This document shows positions 35,601 to 38,600 of a DNA stretch of 64,000 nt, piece by piece. Origin of the DNA: Macrostomum lignano (Eukaryota); NCBI GenBank assembly GCA_002269645.1, contig NIVC01000481.1, positions 186,001 through 250,000 of the forward strand, given 5' to 3'. Made by a program: the position numbers and the translations under genes. Every line of letters begins with the position of its first letter. Position 1 is the stretch's first letter. The notes beneath the pieces were generated by a model. The model saw only the letters and a list, made by a program, of their open reading frames with translations, did no database searches and was not told where the DNA came from.

Positions 35601-38600
35601 TATCTGTCTGTCTGTCTGTCTGTCTATCTGTCTGTCTGTCTGTCTGTTCTGTGTATCTGAGATCTCGCACAGTCTATGCTAATCTTCCATTCTCTAATCC
35701 GCTTAAATTAACGGCGCAGTAACTTGTCGAGTCTTTTATCTCACGCAATTTTCAATACCTCAAAGGAACAAAAATTGTATGCTTTAAAATGGTTTTTTTC
35801 TGTTCAGTTTATTTTTTATGCCCTGTGTTGAATACATTTCTAGTGCTTCAAGCCTTCATGCTTTTTAAGGTTTTTTTTGCAAATTTTGCGCCTAATAACC
35901 TTGAGGTTAATTTTTTTTGTTATAAACTGTGCATATTATTGTTTTAATTTTGTCCCTCTATTTCAGCTCAAAGTTGCTTTTTAAATTTGTTTCTTTGTTG
36001 ATCAAGAGTCTTCGGGTTGAGGGTTGATTCCATCCAAATCTTGTGTCTGTCTATTTTGCCGTAATATAAATCTTGTGACATCTAATATATATATGTGTGT
36101 GTATAAACAAACAATATTTAATTTTTACATCGTGTTACTGGTCAGTCTTAGCAGTAGTATATTTAGTATTAGTGCTTTTTTAGTTTTTTTTCGCGCAACC
36201 GTTATTTACATAACAATGACAAATTTTCACTTGATTATTGATTAGTCAATTGTATTTTTCATGTCTAGTGGTAAATTTTACTTAAACCCCAAACGCACAA
36301 TTACTTTTTTTCTGTATTTCATTTCGTAGCGTTGAAAGTTTTTTTCGCTACATATCGGCCGTTTATGCAGACTGTACCAATAGATACGCAGCAAAATAAT
36401 TTTCCCGCATATTCCCGTGTTTGTTTAAACAGAACTTTAATTAAAGTCAAAATTAACTTTTTAAAAAGACAGAAACTATTAATTGAATCGATTAAGGCAT
36501 TAAATTTGTTTGTTAAAAGATTTCCTAACAAGCAATCTCAGTTTTCCTCTAATGAAAGCACTTTAGTCAGTTTTTGTTTACTTAATTTGTTTAAATTTTA
36601 TTTTGTTGTTTATATTAAATATTATTTCTTTAATTTGCTAACTTTCTTCACTGCAGATGCAAACAGTAAGTACTTACTACTAATTGAGTAGTATATATTG
36701 AGTATGCAAGACTTATTAATAGCTACACGTTTGTCATTTGGAATGGCAGTAGTCAGTAAAGCTTGCGTCCCCACCTCCCCGCTACCTGCCGTGAAAATAT
36801 TTGTTTTACTAATTAAAAGGTTAAGCAGTCAACCATAAAATAGTTAAAAATATTTAAGGTTGTCACAGAAATCGAATACTAATAATATTACTAATAGTAG
36901 AAGTGTTTATTGATAGTAAAATTAGAGTTGTTTATTACGATGTTGTTCTACAATGGTTCTTCTGGTGCACTGACATGTGAATTTTGTTCAGAATCAGAAT
37001 GCGATCTAGGTAGCAGCCTAGTTACTGATACAGTAGTAGATAAGGTAGTTCACAAAGTAAAAAAATAATTTACTACACTTACTGTCACCGTTTTTGAACA
37101 GTTTAAATACTGTTCTAGATGAAATTGCTTTGATAAAAATTGATAAGAAATTATTCTGCATTAACTGAACTGGATGTTTCAATATTTTACGGTTTCTAAT
37201 ACTTTTTTTTCTGTTTAGAATTCAATCAAAGATGTGAGTGCATGCGAAGTCAATACGGATGTGAAGTTTTAAACTTGTCTTTTACGGACTTTAACCAGAA
37301 TTCACAACTCTTTACTTTTTATAATCATACTCAGATTTATGAGTACATGAAATCTCATGGATCACATACTCAGATTTATGAGTACATGAAATCTCATGGA
37401 TCATATACTCAGATTTATGAGTACATGAAATCTCATGGATCACATACTCAGATTTATGAGTACATGAAATCTCATGGATCATATACTCAGATTTATGAGT
37501 ACATGAAATCTCATGGATCACATACTCAGATTTATGAGTACATGAAATCTCATGGATCATATACTCAGATTTATGAGTACATGAAATCTCATGGATCACA
37601 TACTCAGATTTATGAGTACATGAAATCTCATGGATCATATACTCAGATTTATGAGTACATGAAATCTCATGGATCACATACTCAGATTTATGAGTACATG
37701 AAATCTCATTGATCATACTGAGATTTATGAGTACATGAAATCTCATGGATCATACTGAGATTTATGAGTACATGGAATCTCATGGATTATATACTCAGAT
37801 TTCTGAGTACATAAAATCTCATGGATCACATACTCAGATTTGAGTGGATAAAATCTCATGGATCATATACTCAGATTTGAGTGCATAAAATCTCATGGAT
37901 CATACTAAGATTCATGAGTACATGAAATCTCATGGATCACATACTCAGATTAATGAGTACATGAAATCTCATGGATCACACAGACATTTCAAGCATGATT
38001 TTGATTTTTTTAAAATACAAGAAAACAGACAGACAAATCTCAAACAAACGTATCCATCCAGCTGCGCGTAGTCCGCGCCTTCAAGAGCACCGTAGACGGA
38101 ATCGATGACCAGCAGCACGAGTTAATCATTGAACTGCGCAGACGCCGTCTGACGAATCCGAGCCAGCGCTCCAACACGCATCCCAAAGCTTTCTATGGAC
38201 CAGCCAGTTCGTGTATACCAGCTGTAGAGAATGCGGATTCTCCTAACAATAAATTAATTGAAGGAATCTCTTCGTCATCTCAACAATCGAGTCTTCGTCC
38301 GATAGAAAATATGCCTCTGGTCGCTTGTCGAGCTATGACTAGCCCTGTTGGTCCGGCTACCATGACAACCACAGCTTGTTCGTCGCCGTCCGCCTCAACG
38401 CAGGCTTTGAATGATAAATAATCTGAAGATTAAAGCAGAGGGCAGCAGGTTTTTGCCCGAATGGAGAACTATGCAAGGTGTTGCTAATTCGAAAGGAAGC
38501 AGTTAAACTGAGGTTAGAACCGGTTCACCGTCTTCGTCAACTAGTCTAGTCGCGCACAGAAAAGTCTAGTTGCAAAAGAAAAAGATTCTTTTAAACAAAC

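Follow-up and report, generated by a model that had tools for sequence, protein, structure and literature searches.

The plasma-membrane Ca2+-ATPase (PMCA) gene of the free-living flatworm Macrostomum lignano carries, within the intron that interrupts its calmodulin-binding domain, two very short frame-preserving segments with strong splice signals. The gene is contained in a 64,000-nucleotide stretch of contig NIVC01000481.1 (assembly GCA_002269645.1, positions 186,001 to 250,000 of the forward strand), hereafter called the window. On balance we consider it likely that the 9-nt segment, encoding Met-Gln-Thr (MQT), is an ancient cassette exon at the position of vertebrate PMCA splice site C, that the 15-nt segment, encoding NSIKD, is the probable counterpart of a second flatworm microexon, and that the two would alter the calmodulin-binding tail of the pump.

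Two short in-frame segments in the site-C intron

The site-C intron, taken up to the terminal exon that we call tail A, spans positions 33006-38061 (5,056 nt). Following the last common exon, the order is candidate tail C, the 9-nt MQT segment, the 15-nt NSIKD segment, tail A and tail B (Table 1). Because the downstream exons (starting at 38062 and 39903) open in phase 0, insertion of 9, 15 or 24 nt preserves the reading frame. Both segments had been proposed in a first-pass annotation of this DNA as phase 0-0 microexons with strong signals, and their coordinates, phases and signals are confirmed in the window sequence. Each lies within the 3-27 nt range of microexons, is a multiple of three in length, has canonical AG and GT borders and contains no stop codon. 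Their donors (GTAAGT and GTGAGT) and acceptors equal or surpass those of the constitutive exons of the same gene, where donors are mostly GTRAGK and acceptors are C-rich with CAG. A UGC abuts the 3′ splice site of microexon 1 in both Macrostomum and Dicrocoelium, which we take to be the cis signature of SRRM4/eMIC-type microexons and treat as a lead only.

To quantify candidates of this kind, sequences were scanned for a YAG preceded by at least 10 pyrimidines in 15 positions, followed by 3-30 nt in frame without a stop and then GTRAGT. Exactly two strict candidates occur in the 5,056-nt intron, and these are the two reported microexons; a relaxed scan (at least 9 pyrimidines, GTRAG) yielded no further candidate there. 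One further strict candidate, situated in a different intron of the PMCA gene, was found in the rest of the window (approximately 123 kb over both strands); the minus strand had none. First-order Markov simulation of the intron gave a mean of 0.235 candidates, with P(≥1) = 0.21 and P(≥2) = 0.024.

Both microexon regions are single-copy in the window, and the AT-rich block containing them, which is also unique, lies among three tandem-repeat arrays. A repeat or transposon origin was ruled out for both, as each is unique in the window. Recursive splicing was also ruled out, since neither segment starts with GT and the 5′ splice site therefore cannot be regenerated as it is at recursive-splicing sites. 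Likewise, the gene is not a micro-exon gene, a class defined by runs of four or more successive symmetric micro-exons that account for at least half of a gene's exons (10.1101/2020.04.08.031872); it has only two microexons among approximately 15 ordinary exons.

A perfect 14-nt palindrome, AGTAAGTACTTACT, at positions 36665-36678 of the plus strand overlaps the donor of microexon 1. Its ACTTAC half is presumably the same as the 5′ end of U1 snRNA and could pair with the GTAAGT donor. By our own arithmetic, 64 kb should contain about four 14-nt palindromes by chance.

The junction in the calmodulin-binding domain

The junction region was aligned to human PMCA1a (6A69; RRGQILWFRGLNRIQTQ/MDVVNAFQSG, where slashes here and below mark exon borders), PMCA2 (9GSD), C28 in complex with calmodulin (2KNE) and C20 (1CFF). 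With Trp as position 1, the last common exon ends at Gln11 and the tails provide [L/I]12-R-V14-V15-x-A-F18, such that the 1-18 spacing of Trp and Phe can be read straight from the window sequence ending [LI]RVV.AF. The junction therefore corresponds to vertebrate PMCA splice site C, at the same place as IQTQ/MDVV of PMCA1a, between positions 11 and 12 of the 1-18 motif. This numbering, with L5, I8, V14 and F18, has been used previously (PMC12693652). Site C is located midway through the calmodulin-binding domain, where W8 and F25 of C28W anchor the C- and N-lobes of calmodulin, respectively; peptides without the second anchor form an extended rather than a wrapped calmodulin complex, and the 1a variant is thought to be less autoinhibited (PMC8835232).

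Alternative splicing after ...QTQ, as is characteristic of site C, is indicated by the three candidate terminal exons in the window and by paired isoforms in Dicrocoelium. The vertebrate type of site-C event, in which inserts of approximately 90-230 nt replace the second half of the domain, is not what we find, as the 9- and 15-nt segments are in frame and the downstream half is kept. The original proposal that inclusion would insert 3, 5 or 8 residues in frame into the calmodulin-binding helix is consistent with the phase-0 tails and with the structural alignments, and the insertion point falls inside the Pfam domain PF12424. This domain matches every modelled isoform (cut-off 22.9 bits), and the scores drop with inserts: tail B gives 55.9 bits with no insert, 45.8 with MQT, 43.6 with NSIKD and 40.3 with both, compared to 45.4 for tail A and 31.3 for tail C.

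The 9-nt exon is conserved among flatworms

Three flatworm proteins among the PMCA homologues have inserts exactly at the QTQ junction. Hymenolepis microstoma CDS31938 carries an MQT insert, Dicrocoelium dendriticum CAH8519489 reads IQTQ-MQA-MKVVDAFRMGL and Hymenolepis weldensis KAM3183338 reads LQTQ-TQIMAE-LKVVNAF. A 9-nt exon is present in the genomic loci of Dicrocoelium and H. weldensis and in an independent Hymenolepis-like Logan contig (Table 1). When the Macrostomum, Hymenolepis and Dicrocoelium regions are aligned, the only common block is TG[CT]AG/ATGCA[AG][AG]CN/GTAAGT; the flanks are unrelated, and upstream of the exon the TG[CT]AG acceptor is all that the three share. The 9-nt exon thus has the hallmark of a conserved microexon, namely an orthologous exon set in diverged intron flanks. 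The pattern AG-ATGCAR-NNN-GTR, for which we calculate an expectation of approximately 0.005 per 5 kb (own arithmetic), matches once each in the 64-kb window, the 88-kb Dicrocoelium locus and the 39-kb Hymenolepis locus, and every match is located in the intron following ...QTQ.

Proteins P0006 and P0019 contain the exon, whereas isoform P0280 and P0282, the 1,159-aa product of a 4.5-kb Logan contig of transcript length, skip it. Dicrocoelium isoform CAH8519498 is three residues shorter and is without MQA. Because isoforms with and without the insert both exist, the 9-nt exon is a cassette. Macrostomorpha are an early-branching rhabditophoran lineage, and if this placement holds, the exon is older than the split from the parasitic Neodermata.

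Very probably, then, the 9-nt segment is a genuine coding microexon. We think it highly improbable that both segments are chance consensus matches, with MQT and MQA in other flatworm proteins arising as annotation artefacts. Such an explanation could draw on the fact that the supporting proteins are all computational models and that short exons are prone to annotation error. However, a near-identical 9-nt exon with AG and GTAAGT occupies the orthologous intron in Macrostomorpha, Cestoda and Trematoda, it is the sole pattern match in 64, 88 and 39 kb amid diverged flanks, and it has been adopted by independent annotation projects. Moreover, exons of 9 nt would rarely be placed ab initio without spliced-read hints, and the H. 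microstoma v3 annotation was produced by Braker2 with RNA-seq.

Comparison of the orthologous intron in relatives, a check suggested in the first-pass annotation, therefore revealed a conserved 9-nt exon with conserved splice signals, but left NSIKD without an orthologue. The accompanying expectation that gene predictors would miss the microexons is correct for the M. lignano UniRef model, which is without the module, but not for the RNA-guided annotations of Hymenolepis and Dicrocoelium, whose deposited gene models already include orthologous microexons.

The orthologous introns of the annelid Lamellibrachia satsuma and the rotifer Didymodactylos carnosus contain two tails but no microexon candidate, and the microexons look flatworm-specific on this thin sampling. 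In the other flatworm PMCA paralogue (RGLSRLQTQ; Taenia locus L003 and S. margrebowiei locus L004) no MQx microexon or tail exon was found within the available flank, which makes these loci uninformative. Six exon-sized flatworm open reading frame (ORF) fragments were all that a profile search with junction variants recovered, and they revealed no new inserts.

A second microexon in cestodes and the case for NSIKD

The TQIMAE insert of KAM3183338 derives from a second, 18-nt microexon, which is also present in the Hymenolepis-like Logan contig and in a more distant cestode-like assembly (GCA_052426985.1). Between this assembly and Hymenolepis, 5 of the 18 nt differ, all at third positions and all synonymously, and the intron flanks no longer align. 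Synonymous-only change in an exon whose flanks have diverged points to selection on the peptide. Like NSIKD, the cestode exon lies between microexon 1 and the tail exon, and order and spacing in the window run parallel to those in the cestodes: the 9-nt exon, 0.55-0.75 kb, a 15-18-nt exon, 0.4-0.8 kb and the tail. Read from the sequences, NSIKD and TQIMAE each set an Ile at position 14 of the anchor motif. Met15 and Leu18 of the cestode form would in addition partly rebuild the V14-V15-F18 pattern, which may be of functional significance.

We regard the 15-nt exon as the probable local equivalent of this second flatworm microexon. Its strong signals, its rarity and its positional parallel with TQIMAE make it a plausible exon, and we lean slightly towards regarding it as genuine.

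Several results weigh against the interpretation of the two segments as conserved coding microexons. No sequence orthologue of NSIKD is present among the fetched loci, and NSIKD and TQIMAE differ in length and have only Ile3 and a terminal acidic residue in common, such that homology is not demonstrable. Strict scans of the Dicrocoelium and Echinostoma introns returned nothing convincing and relaxed scans returned noise, with no second microexon recognised. The flatworm proteins supporting the 9-nt exon are automated predictions, and RNA-seq support for the exon in those models is presumed. A protein search of a 5.8-billion-sequence database using the tail alone with both inserts gave no match, the query being too short and divergent, and metagenomes scanned twice for spliced QTQ-MQ[TA] transcripts gave none and then three chance, non-PMCA matches. 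Exact look-ups of window-encoded tail ORFs matched no other Macrostomum contig.

Since, according to the simulation above, one or more strict candidates would arise at random in this intron with a probability of 21%, NSIKD taken alone could be a pseudo-exon. The 9-nt exon alone would then be real, and NSIKD would be a chance product of a T-rich intron that is never included. We regard this explanation as possible but rather doubtful. It accords with the lack of a sequence orthologue in any fetched locus and of transcript evidence, whereas the empirical background of approximately one candidate per 123 kb, the T8 tract, YAG and GTGAGT, which are stronger than the signals of most of the gene's constitutive exons, and the constrained second microexon at the same relative place in cestodes all argue for an exon.

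It is also conceivable, albeit improbable, that both segments act as conserved decoy or regulatory exons within the intron, recruiting U2AF and U1 for terminal-exon choice or removal of the long intron and rarely or never entering mature mRNA. Their location between alternative terminal exons would suit this role, and the palindrome could mask the donor of microexon 1; the Logan product P0282 and isoform P0280 are indeed without the insert. However, both segments are stop-free and frame-preserving, which a decoy does not need, and neither has an initial GT. Palindromes of this length are frequent enough to arise by chance, the cestode second microexon has changed only synonymously, and insert-bearing protein models exist. 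The reading that we prefer thus remains that of coding cassette microexons, and from their genomic sequence MQT and NSIKD are predicted to be included, in a regulated manner, in Macrostomum mRNA.

Table 1. Exons and splice signals of the PMCA site-C region in the window and in other flatworm loci. Slashes mark exon borders.
Feature	Source	Position	Strand	Length, sequence and signals	Remarks
Last common PMCA exon	Window	32814..33005	+	ends ...QTQ/gtaagt	phase-0 end; tblastn and alignment to 2KNE, 1CFF and 6A69
Tail C (candidate third terminal exon)	Window	34661..34879	+	acceptor tttcacaatttccag/CGTCGC; ...AEHV then stop	phase-0 acceptor; upstream of both microexons
Microexon 1 acceptor region	Window	36637..36656	+	gctaactttcttcactgcag	branch-point-like gCTAAC, pyrimidine tract, UGCAG at 3′ splice site
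Microexon 1	Window	36657..36665	+	9 nt, ATGCAAACA; donor gtaagt 36666-36671	Met-Gln-Thr (MQT), phase 0-0
Microexon 2 candidate	Window	37219..37233	+	15 nt, AATTCAATCAAAGAT	Asn-Ser-Ile-Lys-Asp (NSIKD), phase 0-0
Microexon 2 candidate signals	Window		+	acceptor atacttttttttctgtttag (t8ctgtttag); donor gtgagt 37234-37239	
Tail A	Window	38062..38421	+	starts LRVVRAF, ends at stop	phase 0; second half of calmodulin-binding domain
Tail B	Window	39903..40089	+	starts IRVVNAF, ends at stop	phase 0; homologous alternative second half
9-nt exon, Dicrocoelium	L001	54320-54328		cttgcag/ATGCAGGCT/gtaagt	MQA; 142 nt past exon, in 23.7-kb intron
9-nt exon, H. weldensis	L002	26660-26668		atgtag/ATGCAAACT/gtaagt	MQT
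9-nt exon, Hymenolepis-like Logan contig	L005	3651-3659			independent contig, same exon as H. weldensis
Second microexon, H. weldensis	L002	27418-27435		18 nt, tttacag/ACTCAAATTATGGCCGAG/gtaagt	TQIMAE; used by KAM3183338
Second microexon, Hymenolepis-like Logan contig	L005	4408-4425		18 nt	TQIMAE
Second microexon, more distant cestode-like assembly GCA_052426985.1	L006	1666-1683		ACCCAGATAATGGCGGAA	TQIMAE

Predicted effect on calmodulin binding

Inclusion of the microexons would lengthen the stretch that separates the Trp anchor from the Val14/Val15/Phe18 cluster by 3, 5 or 8 residues. The tail without an insert reads [L/I]12 R V14 V15 x A F18. MQT would change this to M12 Q T14 [L/I]15 R V17 V18 x A F21 and NSIKD to N12 S I14 K D [L/I]17 R V19 V20 x A F23, and with both inserts the Phe would be at position 26. 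New side chains would therefore take the anchor positions, with Met12 and Val17/Val18 supplied in the case of MQT and Ile14 in the case of NSIKD. The first, C20-like half of the domain, which suffices for binding of the calmodulin C-lobe, would be unchanged; the altered portion would be the N-lobe-recruiting part, which in the vertebrate model also docks on the internal receptor sites of the pump.

By analogy with the larger vertebrate site-C inserts, such changes may cause graded shifts in calmodulin wrapping or affinity, in activation kinetics and in basal autoinhibited activity. An effect on calmodulin binding and autoinhibition is thus predicted, although its direction is not predictable from sequence. 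The inserts in any case amount to an experiment of nature on anchor spacing in the unusual 1-18 motif, with steps of +3, +5/+6 and +8/+9 residues.

More speculatively, these exons may belong to an ancient two-microexon site-C module that re-registers the second anchor stepwise, where MQT sets Val18 and the second microexon restores Ile14 and, in cestodes, also Leu18. Combined with two or three tails, such a module would yield graded calmodulin sensitivities and basal activities, and the bilaterian microexon machinery could bring it into use in neurons and muscle. We put this forward tentatively and consider it less likely than not. If true, PMCA regulation would operate here in a way that differs from the vertebrate tail-swap.

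Alternative terminal exons

Tails A and B are homologous alternative exons, and perhaps tail C is as well. Tail B is nearest to flatworm and lophotrochozoan tails. Candidate tail C is a GC-rich island within the AT-rich intron. Its start, RRMVDDMRS, resembles LRVVRAFKS and places Met at anchor positions 14 and 18, and the exon also has a weak likeness to the arthropod tail sequence STLEDMEERRS. The two tails from which the first-pass annotation derived up to eight C-terminal combinations are both present, but that count overlooked this third candidate.

Paired tails also occur in other spiralians. The annelid L. satsuma has an LRVVRAF and then an IRVVNAF tail (locus L008, 32922 and 36663), in the same order as Macrostomum, and the rotifer D. 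carnosus has two homologous tails, VQVVKTF and LRVIKAF (locus L009, 3527 and 5108). The dual-tail arrangement consequently looks old in Spiralia.

The gene and its surroundings

The PMCA gene has approximately 13 common exons within roughly 5.4-33.0 kb of the window, as established from stop-free segments and tblastn with full-length PMCA; the window exons cover residues 16-1131 of the full-length PMCA P0283. A homology search gave 7,430 matches at E ≤ 1e-10, among which every named match is PMCA-type, and homologues from many animals are 55-70% identical, the best representative reaching 67% across 523 aa. The P-type ATPase core is evident from this homology, and the exon at 24843-25424 contains the DKTGT motif. 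Both PF12424 and PF00689 are matched, with the C-terminal PF12424 domain carrying the Trp1 and Phe18 anchors that mark the PMCA class.

An exhaustive representative search gave a single match at 87% identity, P0137 (M. lignano UniRef A0A1I8F9V7). Compared with window positions 24.9-32.9 kb, this entry is fragmentary and frame-broken; many stretches are 100% identical, some of them to an out-of-frame translation of the window, which indicates identity at the DNA level. The entry stops short of the calmodulin-binding region, leaving the whole site-C module unannotated in the M. lignano gene model.

The three tandem arrays in the site-C intron are at 34155-34534 (a 21-nt unit, 18 copies), 35017-35652 ((TCTG), 159 copies) and 37326-37980 (a 39-nt unit, 17 copies). 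Similar micro- and minisatellites occupy most other PMCA introns and generate long spurious ORFs on both strands.

Another microexon-like segment of 18 nt lies at 18493-18510 (+), with the sequence cacccatctgcag/GTGAACAGAAGACGCCGC/gtgagt and phase 1-1. The intron containing it, between the exon ending at 17207 and the exon starting at 24853, corresponds to the region in which vertebrate PMCAs have splice site A. If included, this segment would add GEQKTP and replace an Asp by His just upstream of the lipid-binding region KKK...EKSILQAKL.

Downstream (3′) of the PMCA gene, long GC-rich ORFs on both strands at approximately 42000-46400 (e.g. minus strand 45352-46248) resemble remnants of retrotransposon gag/pol genes. 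A stretch of approximately 120 aa is found in duplicate on the plus strand, at 41.3-41.6 kb and 46.0-46.4 kb.

Comparison with known systems

Splicing within the calmodulin-binding helix is the main means by which vertebrate PMCAs set basal activity and response speed. In ATP2B1-4 the a, b, c and d variants of site C arise at the same protein position as in Macrostomum, and they likewise vary the second half of the calmodulin-binding and autoinhibitory helix through alternative homologous continuations of the form [ILM][RKD]VV.AF. Vertebrate site-C inserts, approximately 87-230 nt long, substitute for the domain's second half and usually cause a frameshift that leads to another C-terminus. In contrast, the Macrostomum inserts are 9 and 15 nt, keep the frame, displace the normal second half by 3-8 residues and are combinable in principle with two or three terminal exons.

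Ecdysozoan PMCAs have the same two-tail LRVVRAF/IRVVNAF architecture as Macrostomum. They also carry an in-frame site-C cassette at the same QTQ junction before IRVVNAF (insect VIGGELQERLIPVPYSK..TDQA; Trichuris MSEHLIPVPMSKQPTDQA; P0007, P0014, P0025 and P0021). However, this cassette encodes 18-23 residues that are unrelated to MQT, NSIKD or TQIMAE, and it exceeds the definition of a microexon as at most 27 nt.

The two flatworm exons share several properties with the bilaterian neural and muscle microexon programme (Irimia et al. 2014), including a length of 3-27 nt that is divisible by three, strong donors and location at a protein-interaction surface, to which the 9-nt exon adds deep conservation. 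In the planarian Schmidtea, 262 microexons are mostly included in differentiated cells and are partly MBNL-dependent (Solana et al. 2016, PMC4978528); PMCA is unmentioned in the main text of that study. The PMCA family has been listed among those with tandem-duplicated exon substitution in vertebrates, flies (Drosophila PMCA) and nematodes (C. elegans mca-3) (PMC9741552). Such substitution fits tails A and B of the window, and perhaps tail C, but not the two cassette microexons.

Neither microexons at PMCA site C nor the splicing of PMCA transcripts in flatworms was the subject of any paper found in a full-text literature search, in agreement with the initial impression that such a mechanism had not been described. 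The orthologous exons occur in tapeworms and flukes, parasites whose Ca2+ handling attracts pharmacological interest. Use of the same junction in flatworms through frame-preserving microexons of 9-18 nt suggests that site C is an old hot spot for tuning the pump, exploited differently by each lineage. The Macrostomum arrangement is best described not as a new kind of system but as an undescribed, lineage-specific form of known site-C splicing.

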